A stretch of 64,000 nucleotides of DNA from IMGVR_UViG_3300023175_000005:62001-126000, one strand, 5' to 3'. Positions 6,301-35,362 are shown, counted from the first letter of the stretch. Numbers and translations: made by a program. Notes: a model not told the origin generated them from the sequence alone.

Positions 6301-9300
6301 TTAGCAATACCAACACCGCCTGCTACAACTAAAGCACCGTCTGTTGCTAGTGTAGATTCAGTTGTGTCGCTGACTGTTACAATTGTACTCGTTGCAAAAT
6401 TAATGCCTGTACCTGCATCTTTTTGAATTGTATCTAAACTAATTGTACCAACATTTGTGATGTTATTGTCATTAAAACTAGTAGCCCCTAGGCTTACTGT
6501 TCCTGTTGCTGTTAGATTTGATGATCCAATGTTAATATTACCAAAGCCTGAACTTATTGCACCAGTATTAAGTGTTCCTACAACAGTTAAACTTGAGTTT
6601 ACAATATTTGCACCTAGTGTTGTAGAATTTAGAACACTTACGTCATTGATATAATATGCTTTACCGCTTACAAGATTAATGTCTTCGCTTGAATCCCAAC
6701 TAGTGTTTGTAGCATCATAAGTCCATGTTGCATTTGCAGCGTCTACAGTAAGTCCTGCGCCGTCTGCTGCGGCAGCATTCGCTGCGCCCTTTGCTACTGT
6801 AATGTTTAAATCTTCAACATCTAGTGTAGTTGTGTTGAGTGTAACAGTTGTTCCGTTTACAGTTAAATTACCGTCAATAGTAGTGTCACCTGTTGTAAAG
6901 TCAATTGTAAATTTGTTTAAACCGTCACCAAACAGTAAGTTACCAGTTGATGCAACTTGCATACGCTGTGTACCAGCAGTGTAAAAATCTAGTTCATCGT
7001 TATCTGCACCAGCACTACTTTCTGCTTCAATTTTAGTATCTTGGTCTACATCTTTCACACCACCTAGTGATCCCCAGTTACTTCCATCGTAACCTTCAAA
7101 TGTACTATCGCTAGTATTATAACGAATTTGACCTTGTGCTGCTGCTGTACTTACACCAGTTTCGCCCGGACGTTGAGCACTTGTACCTACTGGAATTTTT
7201 AAACCAGTACTTGTTGTAAATACTGCATAACCTGTATAAGTTAAGACGCCACTTGTGTCAATACGTAATCTTTCTGTAGGACTTTGAATAAAATCGCTTG
7301 TTGTTGTAACTGTACCAGTTTCTACAACAAAGTCACCACCTGTACCTGCGCCAGTACCAAGGCCGCCTATAATTTTAATTTCGCCGCCGCCGATATCTGT
7401 ACCAATACCTGCTGCGCCGTGTATCTCAACATCTGCTGGTGTTGCACTTGCTTCTGCATCACCAAAAATTACTTTTTGATGTTTAACAATTAGTTTATTA
7501 TTAATTTCTGCACTACCTGCAACGCCGCCTGAACTACTTACTGTAACATTTAATTCTGTTTGCACAGTAAACGAAGTTGCATTAATTGTTGCCCCTAATA
7601 CTGGCCATGTACCATCTAGTGAAGCAACACCGCTGCTTGCAATAGTTACAAAATCACCTGCTCTAATACCTAACACTTCTGGTGTGTAAGTAAATGTTAA
7701 TGAAGTTGTTGTAGGAATAGTACCTACTGTAGGTTTGTCAATATATACAACATCATCTGCAACACCTGATACTACTGTGTTTGCTTGTATACTTGCACTT
7801 CCTGTAACAACCATACCAACTTCAATTGTTGCTGTGCTAGAAAGCGGAATAAAGTCGTCTGTGTTGTTTACGTTTTCATTTGTTGTTCTAGAAAATCCGT
7901 TTAAGTTGACAGCAACAACTTGACTTGTTGCAGCATCATATCCGTCAATAAATGAAGTGATTGCTCTAGTTGTTGTGCTTGCACCAATTCTAGTTACATC
8001 TGCTTCGCCGCTTATTTCAACAGTTGTAAGATTTTCGTTGTAAACCTTACCAGTAGCAGTACTCTTAGAACCTGTATCTGCTGCACCGATATCTAAACTA
8101 TCTATGATATCAACCGCATCACCCCACACAGGATAACCACCATCTACTACAAGTATATTTCCTTCTCTACCAATATTAAGAGAATTAAGTGTACCTGATG
8201 TTTGTGCATAAATTAAATCACCATCAGCATATGTACTTAGGTTAGTACCGCCTCTGTTAACAGGTACATTACTTGTTAGGTTAGCAGGATTGAGGAAATA
8301 ACTGCTATCTAAACCGTCTAATGTACCTGCATCAACAACACCATCTTTGATAAACACTTGGCCTGACCCAGCAGCGTCAACATCAAATTGTGCTTGGAAG
8401 AATCTACTTGTACCTAGTGTAGAATATGTTCCACCTGGGTCATAATCAGCATTTGAAATACCAATATCTACTGCACCATAATAATCGCCACTGGTATTAG
8501 GACCAGTAAGTGTAATTGGATTATCAGTTGTGCTGGCTTTTGTAAGGGTTTGAACTGCAACAGCATAAGCACTGTCACCTCTTAAGAATGTGTCACTACT
8601 TGCAATACCGCTTGCACCTAATCTGCTTGGTGATATAGTACCTGAAATAATGTTACTTGCATCAATGTTTGTAACAGCAAGAGTGTTCCAGTTTGCTTTC
8701 AATCTACTTGATGTATTGATTACTACATTAACTTGCACATTGTTTGGAATAACCTCCGCATCGCCTGTACCAGTTGCAGTAATATCTGAAGCATTTGTTA
8801 CAAGTCCGTTAATACTGCTTAAAGCATCTGATCGTAGTGTATGTAGTGTAACACTGTTAGTTGTAACAGAACCAATAAAGAATCTTGCACCTGATACAAC
8901 TTGAACACCGTTTATAGAAAATAGTCCAGTTCCAGAACTTCCATCATCTTCTTCTTCTATTCTAATAGCGTCACCAGTTGTTAAACCGTGGTTCGGAACA
9001 ATAATACTGTTATCATAAATGTTAACGTTAAATCTTGTCCATTGATGAGCATTATTAGCAGGAGTTGTTAAAAATTCAATTTGATTTAACAAACTAAAAT
9101 CTTCGTATACTTCGATAGTGTCTGCGTCAATACGCTTTGCATAGTACACACTACCATTTAGTAGTCCGCCGATTGCAACATTACCTAATGTATTATATCT
9201 AATAGGATCACCGTCTGTGTACCCATGGGCTGTCATTGTAATTCTATCGAGTGTATAGTCAACATTACCACCGCCTCCTGTGGTACCTGCTAAAAACTGA

Positions 9301-12300
9301 TTTACAATGCTATCATCTAGTGTGATATTAATTTTAGAACTTACTGCATCATTGTCTTCAATAAAGTCAATTGACGATGCACTTGCTACGTAAAGTTCAC
9401 CGCCTAAAATGTTTACATAAGCTCTATCCTCAATAGCAGCAATTTCAATTTCAAAACCACTACCTGTGCCGCCTACATCGCTTGCATTTAATTCAAGTAA
9501 ATCACCTACTGCGTAGCCTGTGCCACCTCTACGTAAATCAACATCGCTGATTTGTCCTGCTGTAACAGTAACATCTGCTTTTGCTCCTGTACCTACTCCA
9601 GTCTTTGCTTGCAAGTCTACCATTTCGTAAACAAGAGTACCTAGTGTAGGTGTATAACCACTACCGCCAGTGATATTAGCGTTATCTACGTTTGTACATA
9701 TACCATAACGTGTTTCTGTAACTGCACCTTGTGCGTTACCGTCCGCAGAAGTAACAATGGTCCTTACTGTACCTGTTGCTGATTTACTGCCTTCATTAGA
9801 TCCTGTATTTGCAATTGTAAAGGTTGTCGAACTTGGTACACTTGTAACTAGGCCATTTACGTTGTAAAGTGTATCATCACACTCAACTTCAACGTTATTA
9901 CCAATTGATAGATTATGGTTGCCGCTTGTTGTAATTGTAGCAACATTACTTGTTCTTTCAACATCTGTAATTGTTTCAACTGTAAAGTTGAAAGGCGCAC
10001 CACTTGAATCTAATACTAGATACTGACTAGAGTTAGAACTTTTTAAGAAGAAGTTATCGGTAATTTCTGATACTGCACCAAGTGTTAATGGTGCTTGTCC
10101 AGAGTCAACACCCGCAATAAAGATATTGTTTGTAGTATCAAAGTCAGTACCTGTTGAGTCTTCACCTGGCTTGAATTGATTATCTAAGCTAGCAACTAGT
10201 AGGTTAGTTGATGAAGCATAATCACCTTTTGCATATCCAACGGCTCCTGTTGTCGGTTGTGTAATTAAATCACCGTCAGTTGCTGAAATTGGTGATGAAA
10301 ACGTTAATTCAATCTGATCATATTCTTCAGTACCAATATCACCTGCTTTTAGATCAATTGCTGGAATTTCATCAACTTGTGTAAGCCTTGACAAATATCC
10401 ATCTGTGTTTGTACTTGTAAACTGTCTTGTAGCAGGAATCAAATCTGGGTTCAACTGACCGTTAGTATTCAACTGAACAATAGCACCTGGAACTGCCGCT
10501 GTTGACACAGATTTATCAATAAATCCGCCCAATCTGTTTGATAAGAAACTTCTTGTTGCTAACTGTGTAGATAGTCTTGCATCACTCGGACCGCCGATTT
10601 CATCGTCACCTAAGTTAACACTTGTTGAAATTTCTTCAATAGCAACATTAGAAAGACTTAGTCTCAAAGCATCAAGTTCGTCCACCTGAACTTTGTTTCT
10701 AAATGTAATGTTACCAGTTCTGTTGAACGCTGTAATAAAGTCACCAACTTTAAAGTCACCAAGTTCGTTTGTACCTGATGAGTAACAACGTCCTGGTAAT
10801 TCTTCAAACTGTTCAAATTCAGTTCTTGTGTTACCGCCGTTTTGTGGTAGTGCGTTATAGTCTGTACCTGACCCTGCAAATTCCCAAGTATGTGATGATG
10901 AGTTAACAATTGAAGGTCTATGTAACCAAATTGCTTTCTCAGGAAGTGCAACTAGATTTGTTAGTAGTTCGCCTGCAACTGTAGGTTCGATTGTAAATGT
11001 TGCAGTTGAATAACCATTAAATGGTTGAACTTCATTTACACCGATATTTGAAAAAGGACTAGGTGTATGATCATCATCAATAATACTTAAATTACTAAAT
11101 TGCACTCTTTGTGTAGATTCACCTACTGCAACTTCTTCAATTGAAACTACAAGTTCTCTAAGATTAGGTGTCCAACTATATACAATAGCACGGTTATTTG
11201 CTGCGCCTGTTGTAGCAGTAATTTGTCTACCTGGAACAAATGCATAACCTTCACTACCTGATGGTAAAATAAGCTTTTGATATGTTGTGTGACTTGAAAT
11301 AACTTCTTTTACAAAGAATTCTTTGATGTTTGTAAGGAATTTGTGAGTACCGCTAGATGTTGCAATAATATTAACATCAAACTCTAAACTGTCATCAAAT
11401 GTCAAACTAAATTCATTTAGGTTGATTAGTTTTACATAATAGGTTTGCTCTTCGTCAAGTCCTTGAATTGGAGGATTTCCGTTAGCACTATATACAACTT
11501 GTTCACCATTTACAAGTCCGTGTGATGTTTTTGTAAAAATATTTGTTACTTCAGAAACACCTGATCCACCATTAATTAAAACTTCATCGGGCGGATCTTT
11601 AAATTGATTTGTGATTTCACCTTCTGAACTTACGTCAAACGATGCTGGAATACTGTCTGGATCTGAAATTGCATCTTTTATCAAATCGAACAGTTCATCT
11701 ACGTATGCTCTAGGCTCACTATCAAGATCTGTAAGTACAATGCCTGTTAGTCTACTTGCTTCTTCAATTGCATCAATTGTTTGTTCTTCTTGTCCACTGA
11801 TAGTAATGTTAGAACTATCTGCGATACGTTGTGAATAGTATGCAAGTGCTGCCTGTCTAGTCAAAGCGTTAGCAGTTGCCCATGTATCTCTACTCACAGC
11901 ATCTAATATAATACTTAAATCCCTACGACACTTTGCTTCATCGTAATTAAACAAATACCATATATCGCCAGGCGTTGCTGCTGCAACACTGTTTGTGATG
12001 TAAGTTATAGTATCGTCAATAATATTTTGTGTTTCACCTTGAATAAGATCGTAAGCAATTTTATATTCAGGATCTCTAAAGCGTAAAACGAATTCTTCAA
12101 CTGGTGCAGTACGGTTTAAACCGACAATACTAATTGTTTGTAAGCCTTCACTTTGACCTGTTGCTGTAACATAAGCACGGTCAAACACAAATGCTTTAGG
12201 TGAATAACCTGATGAACGTAGTGCATACAAACCAAAGTTTGTAGCAGAGTTAGTAATTGAACAATAACCACCTGACTGTGTATAAACACCGTTGAGTAGG

Positions 12301-13478
12301 AAAATTTGGAAACAAGACACGATCTGTGCGTAAGCATCATTGAGTAGTCGCCAGCCTGTACCTCCAAAACTAAGCATAGTAAATGCGTTAGCAACCATCG
12401 ACTTACCTTGTTCAGGTGTAGCGCCAATTACTGGATTTTCTTGTTCGATAGGAATCAAACCGATGTTTGGAGAAACAATCTTAGCACCATCAATTTTAGC
12501 ACCGTTTAGACCAAGGAAGGAAAGAATTGAACAGTTTTGGACATACGGTGATGTTGTAATAAAAGGAGCAGTATCAGGTAGATTTGTGTAACCTACTCTG
12601 TCTACAGTTGCATCAGACGGATCGTCAAATGCAACACAGTAATCACCTGTCCATAACGGAACAAAATTAGCATCAACCTTGTCTCTAAATGTAAATTCAC
12701 CAAAGTAACAAGCGTTACGAACACGGAGAATATCTTGGTTTGCATTTGCAGGACGAATAATACAACCACGCAAACCGTCACCTTTGATAACTGTGTTATC
12801 TGGAACAATAACCGGGTTTTGTTCCTCGTAATCACCTACAGCAATTTTAACGTTTACACGTATACCATTTGTTGTACCATCAGGATTATAAACTAAACCA
12901 GAAGCAATTTGACATGCACGTTTAATTGTTCTTACAGGTTTGTTCAGGCCATCATTAGAATCATTACCACGTTCTGCAGACACATACACAACGTTACCAC
13001 CATAAACATCTGGGTTTTCAAATGCTAAAGAACCATCACCTGTTAGACGTAAAACCTGTCCATCGATACCATTTTCTGTTGGTAAAACAATATCATATGA
13101 ACTAGGAAGAGTAGTCGGTGCTTTTATGTTAATACTATCAAGACCTGATGCAGTTGCTTCTCTCATCTTCAATGCCTTAGCATTGTCGATAGTAACATCG
13201 TCTAGAAATTCCATATCGCTGATAGAAGCAATAAATTTCTTTTCACCGTCGACTGTCATATCAATAGTACCAGATGTACTATCATCAGGTTCGTTAACTG
13301 CTAGTTCTGTATCTTTGGAAAAAATTCTTCTTGTAATGTCTTGAACAGTATTGTCATCTCTAAGCAGGAAAACTTTACCGTCTGCTGTGTTAATTGCTAG
13401 TTCGCCGCTCTCTAATTGTGAAACTATAGGTTTCTTGTCAGCGACCGCACTTCGCTTGTGTCTAATTTTGGTTGCCAT
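3375..13478 (-). CDS. Giant tail fibre (3367 aa) with a C-terminal intramolecular chaperone (peptidase S74)
   Basis: N-terminus KRS...GELAINTADGKVF typical of fibres; beta-helix-like domain; YadA-head-like NxAxG repeats; GNGSGLT/LNASNL repeats; C-terminal YSDERLK...GVSAQEVQKVLPEAV...YERMVPLLIEAVKE followed by a coiled coil. Confidence 0.85.
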   Translation of the reverse strand: MATKIRHKRSAVADKKPIVSQLESGELAINTADGKVFLLRDDNTVQDITRRIFSKDTELAVNEPDDSTSGTIDMTVDGEKKFIASISDMEFLDDVTIDNAKALKMREATASGLDSINIKAPTTLPSSYDIVLPTENGIDGQVLRLTGDGSLAFENPDVYGGNVVYVSAERGNDSNDGLNKPVRTIKRACQIASGLVYNPDGTTNGIRVNVKIAVGDYEEQNPVIVPDNTVIKGDGLRGCIIRPANANQDILRVRNACYFGEFTFRDKVDANFVPLWTGDYCVAFDDPSDATVDRVGYTNLPDTAPFITTSPYVQNCSILSFLGLNGAKIDGAKIVSPNIGLIPIEQENPVIGATPEQGKSMVANAFTMLSFGGTGWRLLNDAYAQIVSCFQIFLLNGVYTQSGGYCSITNSATNFGLYALRSSGYSPKAFVFDRAYVTATGQSEGLQTISIVGLNRTAPVEEFVLRFRDPEYKIAYDLIQGETQNIIDDTITYITNSVAAATPGDIWYLFNYDEAKCRRDLSIILDAVSRDTWATANALTRQAALAYYSQRIADSSNITISGQEEQTIDAIEEASRLTGIVLTDLDSEPRAYVDELFDLIKDAISDPDSIPASFDVSSEGEITNQFKDPPDEVLINGGSGVSEVTNIFTKTSHGLVNGEQVVYSANGNPPIQGLDEEQTYYVKLINLNEFSLTFDDSLEFDVNIIATSSGTHKFLTNIKEFFVKEVISSHTTYQKLILPSGSEGYAFVPGRQITATTGAANNRAIVYSWTPNLRELVVSIEEVAVGESTQRVQFSNLSIIDDDHTPSPFSNIGVNEVQPFNGYSTATFTIEPTVAGELLTNLVALPEKAIWLHRPSIVNSSSHTWEFAGSGTDYNALPQNGGNTRTEFEQFEELPGRCYSSGTNELGDFKVGDFITAFNRTGNITFRNKVQVDELDALRLSLSNVAIEEISTSVNLGDDEIGGPSDARLSTQLATRSFLSNRLGGFIDKSVSTAAVPGAIVQLNTNGQLNPDLIPATRQFTSTNTDGYLSRLTQVDEIPAIDLKAGDIGTEEYDQIELTFSSPISATDGDLITQPTTGAVGYAKGDYASSTNLLVASLDNQFKPGEDSTGTDFDTTNNIFIAGVDSGQAPLTLGAVSEITDNFFLKSSNSSQYLVLDSSGAPFNFTVETITDVERTSNVATITTSGNHNLSIGNNVEVECDDTLYNVNGLVTSVPSSTTFTIANTGSNEGSKSATGTVRTIVTSADGNAQGAVTETRYGICTNVDNANITGGSGYTPTLGTLVYEMVDLQAKTGVGTGAKADVTVTAGQISDVDLRRGGTGYAVGDLLELNASDVGGTGSGFEIEIAAIEDRAYVNILGGELYVASASSIDFIEDNDAVSSKINITLDDSIVNQFLAGTTGGGGNVDYTLDRITMTAHGYTDGDPIRYNTLGNVAIGGLLNGSVYYAKRIDADTIEVYEDFSLLNQIEFLTTPANNAHQWTRFNVNIYDNSIIVPNHGLTTGDAIRIEEEDDGSSGTGLFSINGVQVVSGARFFIGSVTTNSVTLHTLRSDALSSINGLVTNASDITATGTGDAEVIPNNVQVNVVINTSSRLKANWNTLAVTNIDASNIISGTISPSRLGASGIASSDTFLRGDSAYAVAVQTLTKASTTDNPITLTGPNTSGDYYGAVDIGISNADYDPGGTYSTLGTSRFFQAQFDVDAAGSGQVFIKDGVVDAGTLDGLDSSYFLNPANLTSNVPVNRGGTNLSTYADGDLIYAQTSGTLNSLNIGREGNILVVDGGYPVWGDAVDIIDSLDIGAADTGSKSTATGKVYNENLTTVEISGEADVTRIGASTTTRAITSFIDGYDAATSQVVAVNLNGFSRTTNENVNNTDDFIPLSSTATIEVGMVVTGSASIQANTVVSGVADDVVYIDKPTVGTIPTTTSLTFTYTPEVLGIRAGDFVTIASSGVASLDGTWPVLGATINATSFTVQTELNVTVSSSGGVAGSAEINNKLIVKHQKVIFGDAEASATPADVEIHGAAGIGTDIGGGEIKIIGGLGTGAGTGGDFVVETGTVTTTSDFIQSPTERLRIDTSGVLTYTGYAVFTTSTGLKIPVGTSAQRPGETGVSTAAAQGQIRYNTSDSTFEGYDGSNWGSLGGVKDVDQDTKIEAESSAGADNDELDFYTAGTQRMQVASTGNLLFGDGLNKFTIDFTTGDTTIDGNLTVNGTTVTLNTTTLDVEDLNITVAKGAANAAAADGAGLTVDAANATWTYDATNTSWDSSEDINLVSGKAYYINDVSVLNSTTLGANIVNSSLTVVGTLNTGAISSGFGNINIGSSNLTATGTVSLGATSFNDNNITNVGTISLDTIQKDAGTGINFATSTIVTVSDTTESTLATDGALVVAGGVGIAKKLRVGGIIYGDGSGLTNLNASQLLSGTIPDAVLPTSQSGKTFTSDITVNGHLIGEGGGSSATNFFAGGGAAVTTGIDSVGVGDGVFGAVLTGNQNTGVGKDALALATASANNTAMGAYTLSQIDAATGGNTAIGAESMQNSITANANVAIGYKALEIANASNNVIIGYGAGATITTGSNNIVIGKDAAPTANTTNNEITLGNASHANVRIPGVGLTVNTTTLSFSGTTGFAGVGSSLTALNASQLTSGTVPDGRISSSSVTQHETDIDAVGTLNAGAISSGFGNINIGTSTFTGNGSGLTTLNASNLSSGTVAGARLGGNQSMSGIKTFSNTTQASSTTTGAVKVSGGVGIAKNLHVGGTITGNGSGLTSLNASNLSSGTVPNARISGSYTSITGTGALNAGQITSGFGNINIGTSTFTGNGSGLTNVSADTLDGIDSTQFLRSDANDTASGVISLVGSGAQRLVIRNTTNAGGARIDFTDHASNTQYGRLNFEHSDGASVGSGYGASFKFQTTEPNLMVAIDGPGDFYVNGNKVWHAGNDGAGSGLDADTVDGQDIGDFVNGAGVDNGATTIKVNDADFIVQDTTDGTTNYIWRDHSANTLYLGTGNAVPTLRSTLNMNSNNITNGGTISGTFSGNGASITSINAGNITSGTFPDRFSPSTRYNIGLIDGYGGNSYDKLRVWSSSSYTIGMISAQSYGWLNDYAMTFTMNADNDRGFLWRDTSDAASDGAMSLTTAGNLMVKNVIGIGGNTSNYIAPANGQNYGTFRAEGVYGTSGSYAGWSIRDDWVFMSNGAGAYGIYNDTNNEWSLYGQQNSYTYIYYNGAWKARAQNEGWYVNGQLLATSEVTAYYSDERLKTFTGKLEGALDKVKALNGYLYVENETAKKYGYNNDNTQVGVSAQEVQKVLPEAVVAAPFDLDEDGNSKSGEDYLTVKYERMVPLLIEAVKEADDKIEAQAAEIAELKAMVQKLIEKN

Positions 13479-13584: not shown

Positions 13585-16500
13585 TTAGAAAGTACCACCA
13601 TCTATAGTATCTGTCCAAACTGGTGTAGCATCTGCGTCACTAGTTACTGTAAGTATTTGGAAACTGTTGCTTGCGTCTGCTGTGCCTGCGGCATCAGTAA
13701 CTTGTACAGGATCTGCTGTGTTTCCATATAGTATACCGTTTTCAGTAAATGTGCTTGCTCCAGTACCACCATATTGTACTTCAAGATCACTAGTTAAAAT
13801 AAGCGTTCCGATGTCAGCGTTTACAACAGTTATTTTATTATTAACTGCATCAATAATTTCAGTACTATCGTCTGCAAAAATACTACCAGTAAATCCTGCC
13901 GCATCAAGTATACCATCTACAACTAAGTTTGTTGTAAATGTTGAATTTAGTTCGCTGATTCTAAATTTTTCAGTTAGCAATCCATTATGCATGGTGCTAA
14001 TAATCATATCAAAGTCTTCACCACCGCCTGTTACATCTGTGCTAACAACATCAACTTGTGCTGCTGTTTCAAAGTTGTTTAGGAATGTTTCTAACTCGAA
14101 CTTCATACCAGTACCAGCACCAGAAGTAATTGCACCAGTGGTAGTATGGTGTGCAAGTGTTAACGGATATACAATATCATCTGCTGCGCTATCAGGTGCA
14201 TCTGTAATAAGTCTAATTGTATCTGGAGCATAAACAGTTTCGCCTCTAATTGTAAGTGTGCTTGTTCCTAAATGACCAATTTGAATATCACCGCCTATTG
14301 TGCCGCCGACATATAAGTTGCCACCTATACCCATGCCGCCTGTAACAACAACTGCTCCGCTTTCAGTACTTCTTGATTGTGTATCACTGTTAATTGTAAT
14401 ATCAACAGACTCGTCAACATCCAATTCACTTGCATTCAAATACATTCTCTTTGAACCGTCGGCGTAAAATTCTAACGTATCTTCGTCTGTTCCTGGGCCA
14501 GTTTCTGGTCTAATAAATGTATCTTGGTCAGCATCAATAGTACCAACTAATGAACTCCAGTTTACACCATTGTAGCCTTCATAAAACTGTAAGTCTGTAT
14601 TAAAGCGTACTTGACCAATTACTGGTACAGACGGACGAGCACTTGTGTCTCCTACCGGAACTTGAATACTCTTGTCACTATCAATAATAACAAAGTCGTT
14701 GTTAATCGTCAAAGTACCAGTATCTGCACCAATAACAATTGTAGTCGCTTCGCCCATTGCATTAACTGTTGTTACTGTTGTGTTTAGTAAGTTTACAGTT
14801 AATGAATCAGTTGTAACATTGGTAGTAGGATTTTCTCCTAATTTGATATCATCTTTAACAACTAGGCTGTTATTAATAGTTGTTGTACCAATCAAATCAC
14901 CAATGTTAATGTTTGCAGCGCCGCCCGCAAAGTTAACGGTATTAGCATTATCGTTAACTAGATTAAACTCACTTGCAGTAGTTGTCAAGTCTCCGCCATC
15001 GACTGCAATGTCTAGTTCAAAAGTAACATCGCCTTCAACTGTGCCACCCGTGATTTTATTTAGATAGTTGTTGCTTAGGAATTGTACCACAGCATTTTGT
15101 GTAGGTACAGTATTAATATCTGCTGTACCTGTACTTGCTATAAGATTTGTATTGTCACTAACTTCTTTTAATTCAACACCAACTGGAATACCAAATCTTT
15201 GGAAAGGACCAATGCTTGCAATACCTGTTAAATCAATTTGGTTAGCATTAAGTGTAATAGCACCTGTAAGTGCGTTAACTGCAAAGAAATTACCAACTCT
15301 AAAGTTACCAATTTGGTCAACAGTACCACCTGCAAACACTTTACCAGTATTAGACTCGACAATTTCGTTTTCAGCAATCGGTGAACCGCCAAAGAATGGA
15401 AGTGCGTTATAGGTAATACCTGCACCAACATATTCAAATGCATGACCTGAAGTTGACACAGTACTTACACGCTGCATGTTACCTAGTGTTCCCTTTGTTA
15501 CTGATAGAACACCTGGGAATAATGTAAGTTCTGCAACACCACCATATTCTAAGTTTAATAATCTAATTGCTTCATCTTCAATGTCTTGTGCTTTAAACAT
15601 GATCAATTGTCTGTCAGCATAGTCTGCCATAGATGCTAAACCTGCATAATTATGATCTTGTTCAATAGGAAGATATACTGTGTTTCCTGTTTCAGCAATT
15701 ACAGTAGTTTCAATAACTTCGGCAATTTTAGATACAAGCGTTTTTAGAATCAATCCTGCTGCTGCACTACCATTTGTACCATCTGTTTCTTGTAGTAATG
15801 TAGGTGTACCACTAGGTGTAATATCTATGTTTTGTGCAACATCGCTTAAAACTCTTGCTAGATGCTTATATGTAAATTCGGTAATATCTTGTTGGTCTGC
15901 ATTACCTTCTGATGCTGCACTTAAAATTGTGCCGCTGTAATAAGCTTCTGCTGCTCTGCGAGTTTGTTTGTTACCACCATACATCATATCATAAACTGCT
16001 GCATCAATAATGTAGTTTGTATCTCTTTTACACTTTTCTACATTATATCTAAAGCCAATGATATTTTGAGTAATATAATCAATTACTTGCTGCTGATATG
16101 TTGTGCTATTTGTAAGGACATTATCTGCTGCTTCTACAAGACTGCTACTGATCCAACTGTAATCTGGATCAGTATTTTGAGGAGTAGTACCTAGTCCTAA
16201 ACTGTCTGTAATAGCAAGGATTAAAATATTATAAAGATCATTTGCAACTTCACTTTCTGTTGAAGTGCCAAATGTTCCGCTTAAATCTTGTGTTTCACCG
16301 TTTCCAGGTTGTACAGCAATTGGAACACCTTCAATGATACTAACACTAATATCTCTCAAGTGTTCAATAGCATCAGCAGTTTGAAACTCTTGTCCAACAA
16401 TAGTAGAAACACCGTCATCAAAATATGCTCTAGTGCTTACTAGTATACTTCTGTTTCCGCCGTATAGCATATCATGTGACACACTGTCAATAATGTATTC

Positions 16501-19500
16501 ACTGTCTCTACGACATTTTGCTTCGTCGTAACTCAAACCATTTAAACTTGTGTTAATATAATCAATTACACTTTGTACAAGATCTGATTGAGAACTGTCG
16601 CCGCTTGCTAAAATTAAATCTCTTGAGTTTGTTAAGTTAGAAGCAACCCAAGTTAAATCGGGCTCATAAAGAGATGGAAGATTTTCTGTGCTTTCTTCTT
16701 GTAACACATCAACAATATAAGTTACTAAGCCTGCCAATTCATCCATTTCTGCTGAACTTGCTGGATTACCTGTAAGCGTTTGTCCTGCTCTGTTTTCTAT
16801 AATTATATCGTCAGCAATATCAATTAATTGTTGGTATGCAGCAATTGTTTCGTCTTTTTGTGATGCAGGAATTTGCGATGCAGTTCCTTCAAAATACGCT
16901 AATGCTGCTGTTCTTGTTGCAAAGTTTGTACCGTATTGTATGTCATGCGATACAGCATCAATGATATATCCTGTGTCTCTTTCGCACTTTGCTTGATCGT
17001 AAACTAAAGTTGGGAAACTTAAATTGATCCAAGCAATTAATTCACTAATAATGAACGTTCTGTTACTTTGTAATAGTGTTCTAGCATATGCTTTATTAAC
17101 ATCTGATCCAGGATCAGTAAATGTTAATGGATCAGCACTAAGGACACCATTTTGTAAAATATCAATAATTTCATCAAACAAGTCATTACATGCTGTTACG
17201 CTTGCACTATCTGCCGCAACAAGTGTTGCTACTTCTGTTCTTAGATATGTGATTGCTGCAACAGTTTCTGTTAATTGATCACTGATTACTAAAGAAGCAT
17301 TTGCATTATAATATGCCAGTCCTGCTTGTACACTGTTATAATTTGTACCTAGAACTAAGTCATAAGTTACAGCATCTAGAATTAAAGCAGTATCTCTTGC
17401 ACATTTTGCACTGTCATAAACAAAATAGTTGTTAGCAATATACTTAATTGTATCTTCAACTAGGAAATCTCTGTTTGCTTGTAATAATCTATTTGCATCA
17501 ATTAATTCTTGGCTTGCAGGTGTTGGTGCAGGGAATGTTCTACCTTCACTAGGCAATGCAGTTTGTGCGCCAAAGCCGCCATCTGGAACAGTAGTTAAGG
17601 TTTGATCTGCAAATTCGATTAAGTTTAGAATAATATCAAATCTGTCATTTACTCTTTCAACTGCAACACTGCTACCTGCTGCGCCTGCTGCTGCTAGTGT
17701 TTTTAAATATCTAATTGAAATAATAGTTGCAGGTTTTTGTGCAACATCAAAATATGTTGCTGTTGCTCTTTGATATGCTTGTCCTGCTTGAATACTATTG
17801 TGATTTGTGCCTAGTTTAACATCTCTTACAACAGCATCTAAAATAAGTTCTACATCTCTTTTACACTTTGTTCTATCATATGTAAAGTTTGGATATGTTG
17901 TAAGCAAATAACTTGTAATATTAGTTGCAAAATTATCTTGTGCTGCAAACAATGAACTTCTTGCTGCTTGCACATCTGCTGCTGCCCAAATAACACTTGG
18001 ATATTGTACTTCAGGTAAGTTTGTCAATGCACCTGTGTTAATTACTTCAATAATAATATCAATATAATCGTCTGCACGTTCTGCTTCAACACCTGTTGCA
18101 TTTGCTGCTGATGTATCTTGTACTAACAAGTTACCAGTAGATCTAAATACTGGATCTCCTTGCAAAATCTGTGTTGTAATTTCTTTTAATCTGCCATATG
18201 CTGCAATAGTAGCAGTAGTTTCGTCTGCTCCTAATTGACTTGCTGTTCCTACAAAATACGCTTGTGCTACGTCCCTAGTTGCATAGTTACCGCCATATAA
18301 GATATCGTAAACTAATCCGTCAACAATGTGACCTACATCTTTATAACATGCATCTTGATCATAATCTAATGAAGGATAGTTTTCGTCTACCCATTTAACT
18401 ATTTCTTCTTGAATAAAGTCTTTGTTGTTAACAAGTTGATCTCTTGCATTTTCTCTTGCTGCAATAACACCCGTCGGTGAAGGATATGTGTAATCGTCTG
18501 CACTTGTGCTATCACCTCTCGAAAGGATTTCGATAATCTCATCCATTGCATTGTTTACTCTGCTTGTAGCAGTTGAACTTGCTACAACATTAGGTAAAGC
18601 AAGCATTAGTGTTTTTAGATATTGGTATGCTGCAATAGTTTGTACTTTTTGTTTTTGGTATACAACACTTGCATTTGCACGAGCATATGCTCTACCTGCT
18701 GTAACACTTGAATAGTTTGTTCCTAAAGCAGTATCATATGCAACCGCAGTTGTAATTTGCCTAACATCTCTTTCGCACTTATCTTGATCATATGAAAGAT
18801 CTGTAAATTGGTCTGAAATATAATTTACAACTTCGTCAATAATAAAGTCTTTATTTTGAACAATATTATCTTTTGCAGCAATTACACCGCTGTCAATATT
18901 TGTAAGTTCGTTATAAACTACATCCGGTACCGCAGTACTATCGCCTTGTGTAATTGTATTTGTAATAATTGCAAAGTTTTCAATTATGTTATATCTATAG
19001 TCTATGTTAGCAGGATCTGTATCAGGAACACATTTTAGCATTTCGTCTCTTGCTGCTTCAATACCATATATTGTAGGTGCTAACTGTTGGTTAAGAACTT
19101 TTTGTGATGTTGCACGAAGATAACTTCTGCCTGCATTAATACTTTGATAGTTTGTGCCAAGTGCAGAATCTCCTGATACTGCATCAATAATTCTTTGTAT
19201 ATCTCTTCTACAAATTGTTTCATCATAAATGAATGGTCGTGTTGTAATTTCAGATGAAGTTACATAATATCTTGTTTCATCGCCTTCAAACGTTATAATA
19301 GAACCTGTCTGTGGAATATCACGTAAACTATCTACTTCAACTATTCTGTTTGTAATTAAGTTTACAGTACCTGTTGCAGGAACACTAAACCCACCGCCTG
19401 TAAATGTAATGTTAGGTATAAAATCATATCCACTACCCTGATTACTAATACTTACAGCAACAACTTTACCTGTTGCAGGATCAATACTTGCATTGCCTGT

Positions 19501-20571
19501 TGCTTGTACACCGCCTGGCGTAGTAGGAGGATCAATAGTTACAGAAGGTGCATTTGTATAGCCAGCACCTTGGTTATTAATAGTCACACTACCAACAACA
19601 GAATAATAGTCTTGTGTAGGTCTAGCAGTTGTAAATACTTTCTCAAATAATCCATCAGCAATAATTGCATAAGTACCAAAGTCACTAACAGAGTTCGAGA
19701 TCGAAAGATACCCGCCTGCGGTTGCTTGGAAACCAACTCTTGTAAAAACTGAGAAGCAACTAACAATCTGTGTATATCCTTCATTAAGTAGCCAAAAGCC
19801 AATACCACCTTGTGCAACTTGTGTAAACGCATCAGCAACAAAGGATCGTACAAGACTTCTCTGATCGTAGGCGGCACCGTCAACTTTCATACCGTTGCCG
19901 CCACCGTTGTCGTTTACACGTTTTTCAAGCGGTACATTAGGATCATCTATAATTGGTCTAGCACCTGCCGGTACACCTGGAATTTGTTCTGTTTGAAAAG
20001 GAACAAATTCAGTACCGTCGTTTAACCACGGACCATTCATGTTTGTACAGTTTTGTACATATGGTGAAACAGTTACAAGTGCACCTGGTCTAATTTCTGC
20101 ACACCAACCTGGATCTGCTAATCCTCTAAATGTAAGTTGAAACAAGTAACATGCACAATCCATATAAAAAATTGTTTCAGTATTATTGAGCGGCCAAATT
20201 TGACAGTTACGTAAACTATCACCTCTAACAGTCATACGTTCTTTTAACGTAATCGGATTATCTTCGTAATAGTCTCCTGGTGCAACTTTAATAGTTGATC
20301 CTGCTGGTGCTGCTTCAACAGCAGATTTAACTGTTCGTTTTGCACGATCAGGTCCTTGACCTAATCCATCATTTTCGTCACTACCTTGTAATGACACATA
20401 ATAGATTAGTGTATCAGTAGGACCACTTGAACTACCTGTAACTTTTAGATCACCGTTAATTTCAACAGTGCCGCTACCCGGATTAAGTTCAATTGTACCG
20501 TCACCTTTAATTATAAGTTGACGGTCTCCTATTTTCCTGTCGTGTAATATCTGCTGCTTTACATACTTCAT
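13585..20571 (-). CDS. Large virion structural/fibre protein (2328 aa) with eight helical C-x-R/K-D repeats
   Basis: N-terminal beta-helix-like domain paralogous to the 3367-aa fibre (GDYxExNP, SPYVQNC, QIVSCF); eight YxxxxCxRD-type repeats; shared VPVG...RP...GQVRFNT...EGY module; C-terminal IDGGTF. Confidence 0.8.
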   Translation of the reverse strand: MKYVKQQILHDRKIGDRQLIIKGDGTIELNPGSGTVEINGDLKVTGSSSGPTDTLIYYVSLQGSDENDGLGQGPDRAKRTVKSAVEAAPAGSTIKVAPGDYYEDNPITLKERMTVRGDSLRNCQIWPLNNTETIFYMDCACYLFQLTFRGLADPGWCAEIRPGALVTVSPYVQNCTNMNGPWLNDGTEFVPFQTEQIPGVPAGARPIIDDPNVPLEKRVNDNGGGNGMKVDGAAYDQRSLVRSFVADAFTQVAQGGIGFWLLNEGYTQIVSCFSVFTRVGFQATAGGYLSISNSVSDFGTYAIIADGLFEKVFTTARPTQDYYSVVGSVTINNQGAGYTNAPSVTIDPPTTPGGVQATGNASIDPATGKVVAVSISNQGSGYDFIPNITFTGGGFSVPATGTVNLITNRIVEVDSLRDIPQTGSIITFEGDETRYYVTSSEITTRPFIYDETICRRDIQRIIDAVSGDSALGTNYQSINAGRSYLRATSQKVLNQQLAPTIYGIEAARDEMLKCVPDTDPANIDYRYNIIENFAIITNTITQGDSTAVPDVVYNELTNIDSGVIAAKDNIVQNKDFIIDEVVNYISDQFTDLSYDQDKCERDVRQITTAVAYDTALGTNYSSVTAGRAYARANASVVYQKQKVQTIAAYQYLKTLMLALPNVVASSTATSRVNNAMDEIIEILSRGDSTSADDYTYPSPTGVIAARENARDQLVNNKDFIQEEIVKWVDENYPSLDYDQDACYKDVGHIVDGLVYDILYGGNYATRDVAQAYFVGTASQLGADETTATIAAYGRLKEITTQILQGDPVFRSTGNLLVQDTSAANATGVEAERADDYIDIIIEVINTGALTNLPEVQYPSVIWAAADVQAARSSLFAAQDNFATNITSYLLTTYPNFTYDRTKCKRDVELILDAVVRDVKLGTNHNSIQAGQAYQRATATYFDVAQKPATIISIRYLKTLAAAGAAGSSVAVERVNDRFDIILNLIEFADQTLTTVPDGGFGAQTALPSEGRTFPAPTPASQELIDANRLLQANRDFLVEDTIKYIANNYFVYDSAKCARDTALILDAVTYDLVLGTNYNSVQAGLAYYNANASLVISDQLTETVAAITYLRTEVATLVAADSASVTACNDLFDEIIDILQNGVLSADPLTFTDPGSDVNKAYARTLLQSNRTFIISELIAWINLSFPTLVYDQAKCERDTGYIIDAVSHDIQYGTNFATRTAALAYFEGTASQIPASQKDETIAAYQQLIDIADDIIIENRAGQTLTGNPASSAEMDELAGLVTYIVDVLQEESTENLPSLYEPDLTWVASNLTNSRDLILASGDSSQSDLVQSVIDYINTSLNGLSYDEAKCRRDSEYIIDSVSHDMLYGGNRSILVSTRAYFDDGVSTIVGQEFQTADAIEHLRDISVSIIEGVPIAVQPGNGETQDLSGTFGTSTESEVANDLYNILILAITDSLGLGTTPQNTDPDYSWISSSLVEAADNVLTNSTTYQQQVIDYITQNIIGFRYNVEKCKRDTNYIIDAAVYDMMYGGNKQTRRAAEAYYSGTILSAASEGNADQQDITEFTYKHLARVLSDVAQNIDITPSGTPTLLQETDGTNGSAAAGLILKTLVSKIAEVIETTVIAETGNTVYLPIEQDHNYAGLASMADYADRQLIMFKAQDIEDEAIRLLNLEYGGVAELTLFPGVLSVTKGTLGNMQRVSTVSTSGHAFEYVGAGITYNALPFFGGSPIAENEIVESNTGKVFAGGTVDQIGNFRVGNFFAVNALTGAITLNANQIDLTGIASIGPFQRFGIPVGVELKEVSDNTNLIASTGTADINTVPTQNAVVQFLSNNYLNKITGGTVEGDVTFELDIAVDGGDLTTTASEFNLVNDNANTVNFAGGAANINIGDLIGTTTINNSLVVKDDIKLGENPTTNVTTDSLTVNLLNTTVTTVNAMGEATTIVIGADTGTLTINNDFVIIDSDKSIQVPVGDTSARPSVPVIGQVRFNTDLQFYEGYNGVNWSSLVGTIDADQDTFIRPETGPGTDEDTLEFYADGSKRMYLNASELDVDESVDITINSDTQSRSTESGAVVVTGGMGIGGNLYVGGTIGGDIQIGHLGTSTLTIRGETVYAPDTIRLITDAPDSAADDIVYPLTLAHHTTTGAITSGAGTGMKFELETFLNNFETAAQVDVVSTDVTGGGEDFDMIISTMHNGLLTEKFRISELNSTFTTNLVVDGILDAAGFTGSIFADDSTEIIDAVNNKITVVNADIGTLILTSDLEVQYGGTGASTFTENGILYGNTADPVQVTDAAGTADASNSFQILTVTSDADATPVWTDTIDGGTF

Positions 20572-20913: not shown

Positions 20914-22239
20914 TTAAAAAATAATACTATAAAGCAGAGCTTTATTCCTGCTTATTAATTCGTCTTGTGTACCTAATTCGTTTATAAAATATAAACCTGT
21001 GCCGCCATCAGCTTCGTCTTTTGCATATATCTTTGTACCATCAGTAGGTGGTGTATCTTCTGTATCAGTTAGTGCAGGATCTATTAATTTAGGAAACAAC
21101 ATAGGTGTTAGTACTTGTACATCACCTAAATTATTACCTGATAATTTCAAATCACTATCAAGTCCAGATGCTGAAATGGTATTTTCATCTATGGTAACCA
21201 ATGCAATTTCTGCAGATGTTTCATAAAAGTATGCAATTTCACTACCGTCTACAGTAATTCTAACATTACTTAGAGATGTAACACCATCTAGTGTACTAAA
21301 TGCTTCAACTTTTGTTGTTCCATCTGGTTCAACAGCATTAATTCTATATTGCCAATTATATTTGTGATAATCTCTAACATAATCTTTTAAGAACTGCAAA
21401 TTAGGAATAGCATCTGGTTCATACCCTGGCCAATCTGCTCCTGACAATCTGTTAGAATTTGTAGGAACATTTTTTATTTCACTGCCGTCGTATTCAGCAA
21501 GGCGTTTTTCATAATCAAGTGTGCCTGATACAGAAACAACGCCGCCTAAATTGGATCCTGGTAACAAGTTAAGATCATTACCATCTTCAGTTTTAATGCT
21601 GCTTGTATAGATACCTAAGTATCCTGAACCTTCTAAACCAAACTTAAATGCACCTGCATTTGCTTCTAACACACCGTTAGTGTATGACAATAAGTTTTCA
21701 TCGTAAAACATAACAGCATTTGGCAATGTGCCTCTGTCCATTATGATACCAGAAATTTCATCGCCACCAATACCAGTTGCAATTACTCTTTGTATATTAC
21801 CATCACTTATGTATGCAATAAACCCTGATGTATCTACAGGAGTAGTTAATGCAAAGTCTGCAAATAATTCAACTGTAGTAGGATCAACAACATTTACATA
21901 GTAAGTGTTATTGTTTAATTCTACCATTCCTAAAACATTAGTAATAATTACTTCGCTACCATCAGTAAAACTGTGAGCATCTGATAATTCTACTTGTGCT
22001 GGGTTTGCTTGTGTTATACCAACAATGTCGTATAGTGTATTAGATTGATTGTTTAGTGTTAGTGTTTTATCACTTACAATTAATTCAGACGAAGTAATCG
22101 AAGTTTGAGAGCCGTTGACATCTAAATCACCATTGATAACAACAGTGCCGGAACCTACATTAATTTCAATAGTTCCGCCATCGTTAATTGTTAACTTATA
22201 ATCGTCGACTCCATACTGTTCGATTCTAGACGCTGTCAT
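20914..22239 (-). CDS. Virion/tail protein containing an E1 FCCH-like beta domain
   Basis: ITQANPAQVELSDAHSFTDGSEVIITNVLGMVELNNNTYYV motif; N-terminus resembles that of the 2328-aa protein. Confidence 0.6.
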   Translation of the reverse strand: MTASRIEQYGVDDYKLTINDGGTIEINVGSGTVVINGDLDVNGSQTSITSSELIVSDKTLTLNNQSNTLYDIVGITQANPAQVELSDAHSFTDGSEVIITNVLGMVELNNNTYYVNVVDPTTVELFADFALTTPVDTSGFIAYISDGNIQRVIATGIGGDEISGIIMDRGTLPNAVMFYDENLLSYTNGVLEANAGAFKFGLEGSGYLGIYTSSIKTEDGNDLNLLPGSNLGGVVSVSGTLDYEKRLAEYDGSEIKNVPTNSNRLSGADWPGYEPDAIPNLQFLKDYVRDYHKYNWQYRINAVEPDGTTKVEAFSTLDGVTSLSNVRITVDGSEIAYFYETSAEIALVTIDENTISASGLDSDLKLSGNNLGDVQVLTPMLFPKLIDPALTDTEDTPPTDGTKIYAKDEADGGTGLYFINELGTQDELISRNKALLYSIIF

Positions 22240-27405: not shown

Positions 27406-28146
27406 TTAAAGGCTGAATTTTTTTCTAAAATCTTCAACAGTTATGTGTGTTAAGTTATCTAATCCTAATAAGTTGTCTGGTATAAAACTTGATTTGTCTT
27501 CAATCACTCTTATATATCTCACAGTGGAGTTCTTTTTTATACATGTATTTGTCTGTCTAGACCAATTTCCGTAATAAGTTGCTCTATCTTCTTTTTGTTT
27601 ATAATTTGGAGTGCCAGCAAAAATATTATTAACTTTTGTTCCGTTATCAAGTCCTTTATAATCAAAACCTAAAATATAAATTTCTTCATGGTTATGTTGT
27701 GTTGCAAGCATAAGTGCAGTAGGTCCACTACTCCATCCTAAATTTGGACTCATTAAATTAAGAGATTCTAGTCCTCTTGTGTATCTATTAGGATTTGTCC
27801 AAACCATATTATCATAGTTGTATCTTGTATCGGTAATCTCTCTTACCATCTTTGTATCAACTGCAATTAAATGATCAGGTCTAAAATCTCTGTACACTGC
27901 GTTACATGCATAAACTAAACCATATTGTTTTAATAATTCTAAAGGAATATCTTTTCTACTAGTTCCGTTACCTAATACAAATGCAATATTAGTTTTAGTC
28001 GAAGGTGTACCGTCGTCAAATTTAATTGACTTTTCTAAATGTTTTCTTAATTTATCTTTTTGTTTTTGGTAGCGTTCTAAACGTTTTCTTGCTTTTCTTT
28101 CTAGTTTAGTTTCGCCTTCGATACGATGTTTTTCTTTATCGGGCAA
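27406..28146 (-). CDS. Maf/DUF115 (MptE-like) sugar-transferase-fold protein
   Basis: AFVLGNGTSR, YACNAVYRDFRPDHLIAVD, GWSSGPTAL and EEIYILGFDY motifs. Confidence 0.6.
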   Translation of the reverse strand: MPDKEKHRIEGETKLERKARKRLERYQKQKDKLRKHLEKSIKFDDGTPSTKTNIAFVLGNGTSRKDIPLELLKQYGLVYACNAVYRDFRPDHLIAVDTKMVREITDTRYNYDNMVWTNPNRYTRGLESLNLMSPNLGWSSGPTALMLATQHNHEEIYILGFDYKGLDNGTKVNNIFAGTPNYKQKEDRATYYGNWSRQTNTCIKKNSTVRYIRVIEDKSSFIPDNLLGLDNLTHITVEDFRKKFSL

Positions 28147-35065: not shown

Positions 35066-35362
35066 TAGTTTCATGTAGATTAATTAGTCAGACGGAACCT
35101 TGCAGCGGTTCCATCCTCCTCGAGCTTCATGTGAGTTGCATAGCCGAGACTTGGAAGTAGGTATTTGACTTTGCTACTGGGCTCTAACCTTTCCCAACCT
35201 ACGTCGACATCACGCAAAATGCGCTATCCCCCGCTTCGTTCCTAGTGCTAAGGGGTTTTCGTAGCATACAGCCTGTGGGACTTCACCAGTGTCTGATCAC
35301 GTGGTTACGTGAAGCTCAAGGTGGATCGAACAATTCCGATCAAACAGTGTCCTGATGTGCCT
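35066..35362 (-). ncRNA. Putative ~290-nt structured RNA immediately 3' of the GIY-YIG gene
   Basis: GC-rich island; long-range helix UCCACCUUGAGCUUCA/UGAAGCUCGAGGAGGA; several hairpins; H-type pseudoknot; G-U pairs favour the minus strand. Confidence 0.6.

Follow-up and report, generated by a model that had tools for sequence, protein, structure and literature searches.

Eight tandem domains, predicted to be phycobiliprotein-like, in a giant tail-fibre protein of an uncultured coastal jumbo phage

Phycobiliproteins (PBPs; Pfam PF00502), the light-harvesting proteins of cyanobacteria, are globin-type subunits with helices A to H, in which a C-x-R-D motif on helix E attaches a bilin through Cys84 (numbering of alpha-phycocyanin, CpcA). 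An N-terminal X–Y helix hairpin builds the alpha-beta monomer, and the monomers assemble into the (alpha-beta)3 discs of the phycobilisome. A PBP-type domain is also found, in single copy, in ApcE, the large core-membrane linker of the phycobilisome core, which attaches its bilin without a lyase. Bilin biosynthesis-associated globins (BBAGs) of heterotrophic bacteria are PBP paralogues outside the light-harvesting antenna. CXRD is the recognized attachment motif in PBPs and BBAGs, and BBAG-1 and BBAG-3, which carry it, attach several bilins without lyases (PMC10151467). Among viruses, T4-like cyanophages encode giant tail or virion structural proteins, and some of these phages also carry cpeT, a T-type bilin-lyase gene. 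That a virus particle carries bilin pigment has never been shown for a phage.

We analyzed a stretch of 64,000 nt from an uncultured T4-like jumbo phage of coastal (salt-marsh) water (IMGVR_UViG_3300023175_000005:62001-126000; hereafter, the window). A sequence-only reading of this DNA had pointed to eight helical repeats with an invariant Cys in a virion protein, and had interpreted them as PBP-like domains. The observation was confirmed. The ORF at 13585–20571 (−) encodes 2328 aa, and C-x-[RK]-D occurs in it exactly eight times, at aa 454, 599, 742, 903, 1057, 1196, 1353 and 1514, with a spacing of 139–161 aa and a Tyr five residues before each Cys. The Cys codons lie where that reading had placed them, and the sequence it gave for repeat 5 was correct. 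A profile built from homologues found eight domains, with E-values of 8e-29 to 1e-55 each, so the repeats are not due to chance. The description of the region as nearly free of other Cys was also right, as aa 440–2328 contain only two others (Cys514 and Cys1128). The features are as follows.

13585–20571 (−), gene for the 2328-aa virion appendage (tail-fibre-like) protein
19246–20571 (−), N-terminal part (aa 1–442), not PBP-like, with 6 of the 16 Cys and an Ig-like stretch at aa 323–393; matches PHROG tail fiber phrog_17885 over aa 56–177 and phrog_460 over aa 323–393
18913–19245 (−), repeat 1 (aa 443–553), lacking helices A/B; Cys454 codon at 19210–19212; profile match E 8e-29
18481–18903 (−), repeat 2 (aa 557–697); Cys599 codon at 18775–18777; profile match E 1e-46
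17998–18474 (−), repeat 3 (aa 700–858), long form with a G–H insertion; Cys742 codon at 18346–18348 (C-Y-K-D); profile match E 1e-55
17602–17991 (−), repeat 4 (aa 861–990); Cys903 codon at 17863–17865; profile match E 2e-40
17128–17523 (−), repeat 5 (aa 1017–1148), the best PBP match; Cys1057 codon at 17401–17403
16660–17109 (−), repeat 6 (aa 1155–1304), long form; Cys1196 codon at 16984–16986; profile match E 2e-53
16165–16653 (−), repeat 7 (aa 1307–1469), long form; Cys1353 codon at 16513–16515; profile match E 3e-43
15676–16158 (−), repeat 8 (aa 1472–1632), long form; Cys1514 codon at 16030–16032; profile match E 8e-44
13585–15675 (−), C-terminal fibre part without Cys (aa 1633–2328), likely the distal or receptor-binding region; matches PHROG tail fiber, baseplate wedge and virion structural families over aa 1703–2092
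11655–12068 (−), one further intact PBP-like domain (YDEAKCRRD) inside the neighbouring 3367-aa fibre gene (3375–13478, −), which ends in a Peptidase_S74 chaperone domain; profile match E 1.6e-23

The last of these domains lies outside the range considered by the sequence-only reading. That reading had also proposed that the helix preceding each Cys is missing before repeat 1 and reappears after repeat 8, hinting at a permuted or domain-swapped chain. The first half of this held: repeat 1 aligns only from profile position 33, and most homologues show the same. The second half did not, as a search for the trailing helix gave no profile match even at an E-value of 1000. Moreover, AlphaFold models of one and of two repeats fold confidently in the normal PBP helix order.

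Assignment of the gene to the virion rests on sequence and position. The protein matches PHROG tail fiber, short tail fiber and virion structural families (E 1e-118 to 1e-28), with tail fiber families at E 1e-118, 1e-76 and 1e-44. It lies between the head genes and the second fibre gene, and neighbouring genes encode the major head protein, protease, portal, and baseplate hub and wedge. Cyanophage counterparts are annotated as virion structural proteins.

To assess the relationship to PBPs, we used profile and structure comparisons. PF00502 scored above its curated cut-off of 22.2 bits for the whole protein (23.1 bits) and for repeat 5 (26.6 bits, E 6.5e-6). Repeat 3 reached 19.2 bits (E 0.0013), and the other six repeats had no listed PF00502 hit. 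Of 148 diverse repeats compared with 24,736 Pfam families, 13 hit PF00502 at E<0.01, whereas no other family was hit by more than two. The AlphaFold model of repeat 5 has seven helices, with a pLDDT of 94.3 and a pTM of 0.88. Essentially all of its 50 listed Foldseek matches in the PDB were phycobiliproteins, the bilin domain of ApcE or smURFP, at TM 0.64–0.73 and up to 26% identity, although the E-values were modest (2.6e-3 at best). A model of repeats 5 and 6 together (pTM 0.88, which implies rigid packing) gave the same result. The two models retrieved almost only PBPs from 350,542 PDB chains, with 130–146 aligned columns. Profile-to-PDB alignments placed the Cys on alpha-phycocyanin Cys84, with a shared Y-D...K-C-x-R-D-[IV]-G-Y. 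Sequence-only matches to solved PBPs were marginal, however (E 0.06–2), and a type IV pilin scored as well. A protein language-model search gave no named neighbour. The X–Y hairpin is absent: Pfam coverage starts at profile position 47 of 155, the PDB alignments start at chain residue ∼37–41, and only two short helices precede helix E in the model.

The repeat family is large, with at least 1661 clusters and up to ∼40 repeats per protein. Within the protein studied here, repeats are only 17–31% identical, yet all eight keep Y40, C45, D48, D59, N65, Y75 and T91. Across 1280 homologous repeats, mean column identity is ∼24%, whereas the Cys is kept in 90%, the Arg in 90% and the Asp in 95%. In the 1157 repeats that have the Cys, D48, D59 and Y75 are kept in 100%, and R/K47 and T91 in 98%. 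In the remaining 123, the Cys is replaced by Y, F or W, and the partners are mostly lost too, with R47 lost in 84%, T91 in 76% and Y75 in 60%. Thus, the site behaves as all-or-none, an observation that goes beyond the sequence-only reading. There is usually exactly one Cys per repeat (973 of 1280).

Among 50,697 cultured phage genomes, the repeat was found only in cyanophages (213 of 213 and 362 of 362 records). In S-RSM4, S-CAM1, S-H9-1 and S-PM2, cpeT lies ∼1–1.5 kb upstream of a giant PBP-repeat tail protein. By coordinates, the same holds, at ∼1–3.5 kb, in ACG-2014e, ACG-2014j, S-CAM3, S-RIM44, Sf-FP1 and S-H9-2. Yet cpeT is present in only 83 records, against 362 with the repeat, and T-type lyases of PBPs serve Cys153/155 rather than Cys84. 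P-HM2, which shows light-dependent adsorption, has no detectable repeat in the 25 kb scanned next to its cpeT. For the phage studied here, no haem oxygenase, bilin reductase or lyase gene was found in the 64-kb window, in line with the sequence-only reading, or in a 31-kb locus of a relative; nor was a haem oxygenase or ferredoxin-dependent bilin reductase found in relatives' loci L001 and L012. The major capsid protein is closest (65–70% aa identity) to those of jumbo phages of Vibrio, Sinorhizobium and enterobacteria, not to cyanophages, and so groups this phage with jumbo phages of Proteobacteria. The host may therefore make no phycobilins. The gene is present in metatranscriptomes from the same habitat.

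Taken together, our data show that the gene encodes a large protein, assigned by sequence and position to a virion appendage (tail-fibre-like), whose middle 1200 residues form an array of eight domains of PBP type, with a predicted globin fold (helices A, B, E, F, F', G and H, apart from helices A/B in repeat 1) and with the attachment motif kept on helix E in each. Neighbouring domains are predicted to pack rigidly. Homology to PBPs is near certain. From the pattern of conservation we infer that the Cys belongs to a ligand site (Y40, C45, R47, D48, D54, D59, N65, Y75 and T91) that is either kept whole or lost whole, and hence is a selected binding site rather than scaffold; this is likely. 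That the ligand is a bilin is likewise an inference, plausible but tentative, as is the full reading that includes this step. The interpretation offered by the sequence-only reading was thus partly supported: fibre location, PBP-type domains and the match of the Cys/Arg/Asp triad held, whereas binding of bilin or haem remains conjecture, and nothing points to haem.

In the mechanism we consider most likely, each domain would take up a linear tetrapyrrole during assembly in the infected cell. This could be biliverdin or a reduced bilin, made by the host or the phage. It would bind in the PBP cleft with a thioether bond to the Cys, while the Arg and Asp would hold the propionate and pyrrole nitrogens. 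Attachment would be autocatalytic, as in ApcE and BBAGs, or lyase-assisted, as the cpeT next to the cyanophage counterparts suggests. The fibre shaft would then be a rod carrying one pigment per domain, which might serve in light sensing for adsorption, photoprotection or stabilization.

Other explanations can be entertained. An ancestral PBP or BBAG-type globin may have been captured and multiplied as a rigid helical spacer for fibre shafts, with the conserved polar residues building the fold and the domain–domain or chain–chain interfaces and no chromophore bound. Arrays of 5 to ∼40 copies in giant fibre proteins do look like length-setting spacers, and the rigid two-repeat model, the loss of the X–Y hairpin, the absence of bilin genes from the window and the heterotrophic hosts of the capsid's cultured kin all fit this view, as does the fact that the ∼10% of repeats lacking the Cys remain in the array. 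But a pure scaffold does not explain why the exact PBP chromophore triad is the best conserved feature, or why C, R, D, D59, Y75 and T91 are kept or lost together, with bulky aromatics replacing the Cys. A lone, unpaired Cys conserved in a particle exposed to oxygenated seawater would also be unusual for a scaffold. We consider this alternative unlikely, though less so than the others.

Alternatively, the cleft may have been re-purposed to bind or react with something else, such as a host surface component bound multivalently along the fibre, a metal ion held by the Asp/Asn cluster, or a covalent cross-link through the Cys. The position aligned to PBP Arg93 is Asp here, and the all-or-none site includes residues (D54, D59, N65, Y75 and T91) that are not known to be part of the PBP motif; several of these (D59, N65, Y75 and T91) are invariant. 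Fibres are receptor-binding organs, and many copies would give avidity. On the other hand, the residues shared with PBPs are exactly those that hold the bilin in PBPs (PMC10151467), no known carbohydrate-, metal- or thioester-type domain family was hit, and one Cys per domain leaves no disulfide partner within the domain. This possibility also appears unlikely. Chance or convergent resemblance of an unrelated helical repeat is very improbable: individual sequence scores are weak, and most single repeats do not reach PF00502, but the 13 independent hits to one Pfam family, the two high-confidence models and the alignment of the motif in register with Cys84 argue against it.

A bolder reading, which we regard as unlikely but not excluded, is that the fibre shafts of both marine T4-like cyanophages and this jumbo-phage lineage are covalently bilin-loaded rods. 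These would be the missing acceptor for phage-encoded bilin enzymes and CpeT, and would act as a light sensor on the virion that gates adsorption, the unexplained 'light-sensitive tail fibre' proposed for S-PM2. If so, they would be the first pigmented, photoreceptive virus particles. We found no paper describing the PBP-like repeats reported here.

Compared with PBPs, and alpha-phycocyanin in particular, the phage domains have the same predicted globin-type fold, the same motif in register with Cys84 and a unit size of ∼140–160 aa. They differ in lacking the X–Y hairpin, which makes a PBP-style alpha-beta monomer and (alpha-beta)3 ring unlikely, in the Asp at the Arg93 position and the extra invariant residues, and in that 8 to ∼40 domains are fused in one virion protein, encoded next to head and baseplate genes, instead of forming free subunits; any pigment is conjectural. 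The fusion of the domains in a phage structural protein also argues against assembly into the (alpha-beta)3 discs of a phycobilisome. ApcE (PDB 4xxi), one of the best structural matches (TMq 0.72), similarly embeds a PBP-type domain in a large multi-domain protein and offers a precedent for self-loading, but sequence identity is only 16–17%. BBAGs show that this fold binds bilins in non-photosynthetic settings (PMC10151467); they are single-domain proteins clustered with haem oxygenase and pre-PcyA genes, and no such genes were found near this fibre.

The giant tail or structural proteins of T4-like cyanophages (S-PM2d088 and S-PM2d218, T4-like GC 830 and 734; SRSM4_214; and tail proteins of Syn9, S-CAM1, S-WAM2 and S-H9-1) carry the same repeat with the same invariant residues, K-C-x-R-D-x-G-x-x-V-D-A...D...G-G-N. 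They are annotated as tail fibre or virion structural proteins, and are structural neighbours in BFVD. In the records and papers searched, the repeat is not annotated or discussed as PBP-like. These proteins are only ∼25% identical to the one studied here, and only in the repeat region; they have fewer repeats, some degenerate, and belong to a different phage lineage by capsid, the capsid protein of the phage studied here being nearest to those of Vibrio, Sinorhizobium and GAP32-like jumbo phages, so neither orthology over the whole protein nor a Kyanoviridae genome backbone is supported. Ig-like and other decorative repeat domains of phage fibres and capsids are likewise small tandem domains in giant virion proteins with variable copy number. 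Those are beta-sandwich folds without a conserved cofactor-type site, whereas the fold predicted here is all-helical and carries a chromophore-site signature.

To examine the repeats identified in the sequence-only reading, we first returned to the ORF itself. The repeats lie in one ORF of 2328 aa on the minus strand (window 13585-20571). The motif C-x-[RK]-D occurs exactly eight times in its product, at aa 454, 599, 742, 903, 1057, 1196, 1353 and 1514, corresponding to the eight Cys codons that the sequence-only reading had picked out, and the spacing is 139-161 aa. From aa 440 to the C-terminus there are only two other Cys. Alignment of the eight units showed invariant Y40, C45, D48, I52, D59, G63, N65, Y75 and T91, even though the units are only 17-31% identical to one another. 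A profile built from homologues found eight domains, with E-values of 8e-29 to 1e-55. These data confirm the observation made from the sequence alone.

The ORF product matches PHROG tail fibre, short tail fibre and virion structural families (E 1e-118 and weaker), and the genes around it are typical of a phage structural region. These include the major head protein, a protease, the portal and a tape-measure-like protein, a second fibre, baseplate hub and wedge, the late sigma factor, SbcCD, and a T4 baseplate protein. In about 10 kb of flanking sequence, the next genes on the left are neck and sheath genes. The following features of the window are relevant:
13585-20571 (-), the 2328-aa fibre-like protein with eight PBP-like repeats
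3375-13478 (-), the neighbouring 3367-aa fibre, with a C-terminal Peptidase_S74 chaperone domain
11655-12068 (-), a single intact PBP-like domain (YDEAKCRRD; YDEAKCRRDLSIILDAVSRD) inside gene 3375-13478
20914-22239 (-), a 441-aa protein just upstream of the repeat-bearing fibre, with a match to the ubiquitin-E1 FCCH domain, a small beta-barrel (PF16190, 34.5 bits)
2097-2708 (-) and 27406-28146 (-), glycosyltransferase-like genes (Anp1 family; sialyltransferase-like PHROG) inside the structural gene cluster, which may modify virion proteins
35340-35774 (-), a SegE-type GIY-YIG homing endonuclease gene (PF19835, E 1e-34) between the baseplate gene and the SbcCD genes
51692-64000 (+), an ORF of more than 4100 aa that runs off the right end of the window, matches phrog_10938 (virion structural protein, E 0) and contains Ig-like stretches, but has no PBP-like repeat
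Thus, two different fibres of this phage share the PBP-like module.

The capsid protein is 65-70% identical to those of 350-470-kb jumbo phages of Vibrio, Sinorhizobium and enterobacteria. No near-identical DNA was found among cultured phages, the rest of the window giving only a short capsid stretch. A scan of GTDB representative genomes with the whole protein found no relative, and so provides no prophage or host clue. The sequence lies on a 256,558-bp IMG/VR contig and is found in many salt-marsh metagenomes as well as in metatranscriptomes from the same setting. For the fibre region (15545-19230), 85-97% of sampled words are present in salt-marsh metatranscriptome assemblies, so the gene appears to be expressed in situ, although this rests on shared words rather than on mapped reads. 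These data indicate an uncultured, apparently transcribed, T4-like jumbo phage from coastal water.

To assess whether the repeats are related to phycobiliproteins, we used profile searches and structure prediction, including the Pfam and Foldseek comparisons that had been proposed beforehand. Pfam PF00502 (Phycobilisome protein) was the only family above its cut-off for the whole protein (23.1 bits against 22.2). Repeat 5 alone scored 26.6 bits (E 6.5e-6) and repeat 3 scored 19.2 bits. Of 148 repeats chosen to be under 50% identical to each other, 13 hit PF00502 at E<0.01, whereas no other family was hit by more than two. The AlphaFold model of repeat 5, built with that alignment, is confident (pLDDT 94.3, pTM 0.88) and contains seven helices. 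Its 50 best PDB matches are essentially all phycocyanin, phycoerythrin, allophycocyanin, the ApcE bilin-binding domain or the APC-derived smURFP, with TM scores of 0.64-0.73 over about 120-140 columns and up to 26% identity. A two-repeat model (pLDDT 93.5, pTM 0.88) again retrieved PBPs, and its high pTM implies that neighbouring domains pack rigidly. Profile searches of PDB sequences were only marginal (E 0.06-2, with a pilin scoring as well). Yet six of the eight hits are alpha-phycocyanins, and the alignments put the phage Cys on Cys84, with a shared Y-D...K-C-x-R-D-[IV]-G-Y. The ESM Atlas gave no informative neighbour. The unit starts at about PBP residue 37-41, so the X-Y hairpin that builds the PBP alpha-beta monomer is absent.

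The sequence-only reading had also proposed a permuted or domain-swapped chain, based on a helix missing before repeat 1 and appearing after repeat 8. This is only half right. Helices A/B are indeed missing before repeat 1, but a sub-profile of the A/B helices found nothing after repeat 8, and the models fold in the normal helix order. We therefore rejected the permuted unit as stated.

We next asked how widespread the repeat is. A word-indexed search found more than 1000 giant metagenomic proteins (2000-4000 aa), some on contigs of 200-346 kb. About a tenth of these already carry an automatic PF00502 label, and none has a meaningful name. An exhaustive profile search found 1661 clusters at E<=1e-3 and 734 at E<=1e-30, with some proteins having up to about 40 matched stretches and reaching 6382 aa. 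Structural neighbours in BFVD are tail and structural proteins of Synechococcus phages and of uncultured caudoviruses. When the repeat profile was used to search 5.8 billion proteins for short stand-alone relatives or true PBPs, only fragments of giant proteins appeared, and no PBP at E<=10. An apparent excess of even repeat numbers among the first 120 homologues did not hold in the broader family.

From 120 homologues we extracted 1280 repeats. Overall conservation at the key positions is 90% for C45, 90% for R47, 95% for D48, 85% for D54, 97% for D59, 91% for N65, 94% for Y75 and 91% for T91, compared to a mean column identity of about 24% in the 148-repeat alignment. In the 1157 repeats with the Cys, D48, D59 and Y75 are kept in 100%, and R/K47 and T91 in 98%. 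In the 123 repeats without it, D48 is lost in 47%, D59 in 29% (36 of 123), Y75 in 60%, R/K47 in 84% and T91 in 76%. Where the Cys is absent it is replaced by Tyr, Phe or Trp. These degenerate units sit mostly at array positions 1-3, giving patterns such as C-F-Y-C-C-C..., whereas all eight repeats in the window are intact. The counts are not independent, since the repeats are related to each other. This all-or-none pattern, with bulky aromatics replacing the Cys, is what one expects of a ligand pocket that is either in use or filled in, a reading inferred from sequence conservation alone.

For comparison, we searched 50,697 phage genomes by tblastn. The repeat region hit 213 records, all of them cyanophages. 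With the S-RSM4 repeats as query, 362 records were hit, again all cyanophages, including S-PM2, Syn9 and some Prochlorococcus phages. The cyanophage repeats keep the same residues. In S-RSM4, S-CAM1, S-H9-1 and S-PM2, the gene order is cpeT, then tRNAs, then usually a 2OG-Fe(II) oxygenase, then a giant PBP-repeat protein, then a short tail fibre. In S-RSM4 an HNH endonuclease takes the place of the oxygenase. The bilin-lyase gene cpeT lies about 1-1.5 kb upstream of the giant PBP-repeat tail protein. In S-H9-1, cpeT is unannotated and falls in a gap of the RefSeq annotation (NC_070961.1 31999-32520; positions 11306-11827 of L004, the S-H9-1 locus), its protein being 82% identical to S-RSM4 CpeT. 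Coordinates indicate the same arrangement, at about 1-3.5 kb, in ACG-2014e, ACG-2014j, S-CAM3, S-RIM44, Sf-FP1 and S-H9-2. But this may be inherited gene order rather than functional linkage. Other copies of the repeat proteins lie elsewhere, and cpeT is in only 83 records. Moreover, in P-HM2, cpeT is also directly upstream of the tail-fibre module (YadA-domain protein, tail fiber proteins), yet no repeat is detectable in the 25 kb after cpeT (NC_015284.1 17000-42000). Because P-HM2 shows light-dependent adsorption, the link between the repeat and light-dependent adsorption is not general on present evidence.

The idea that the fibre carries bilin was not helped by its gene context. The window and the relatives' loci contain no haem oxygenase, bilin reductase or lyase, and the supplements of the phage tetrapyrrole paper do not list these contigs. 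The host may be a heterotroph, given the kinship of the capsid. However, biliverdin needs only a haem oxygenase, and BBAG-type globins self-load bilins in heterotrophs (PMC10151467). Overall, the interpretation offered in the sequence-only reading is partly supported. The analysis itself shows the profile and predicted-fold relationship to phycobiliproteins, which we regard as nearly certain homology, and the coordinated conservation around the Cys. That these residues form a selected ligand site at the chromophore position is an inference, which we consider likely. That the ligand is a covalently bound bilin is likewise inferred, and remains a tentative proposal, somewhat less likely than not. 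It is possible, but unlikely on present evidence, that such a bilin would serve as a virion light sensor or that the domains would be the acceptor for phage bilin genes.

These findings bear on three open questions, each of which becomes directly testable. One is why marine phages, including phages of Prochlorococcus and of heterotrophs, which have no phycobilisome to serve, carry haem oxygenase, bilin reductases (pebS, pcyA, pcyX) and cpeT. Reviews and recent work call this unclear or enigmatic, and a BBAG-type acceptor has been floated only as a possibility (PMC2984593; PMC11480375). A predicted virion protein with 8 to about 40 intact, putative bilin-attachment sites is a concrete candidate acceptor, and in at least ten cyanophages, six of them judged by coordinates, cpeT sits just upstream of such a gene. 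Another is why adsorption of some cyanomyoviruses, S-PM2 among them, is light-dependent yet independent of host photosynthesis. This has been tentatively ascribed to light-sensitive receptors or tail fibres (PMC6628666), and S-PM2 has two giant proteins with these domains. The third is where phycobiliproteins came from, as a large viral branch of the bilin-binding globin family adds a new lineage and a possible vehicle for transfer. Even if the domains turn out to be pigment-free, this would be a striking case of a light-harvesting fold recruited as a building block of phage fibres, and would give a ready annotation for more than 1600 unannotated protein clusters.

Targeted full-text literature searches, and a broader one that returned nothing relevant, found no paper describing PBP-like domains in phage virion proteins. 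CXRD as the PBP/BBAG attachment motif, and bilin-binding globins outside the antenna, are both already known (PMC10151467). Compared to these, what is new here is a viral branch of the bilin-binding globin family that is tandem, lacks the hairpin, and is fused into virion fibres.
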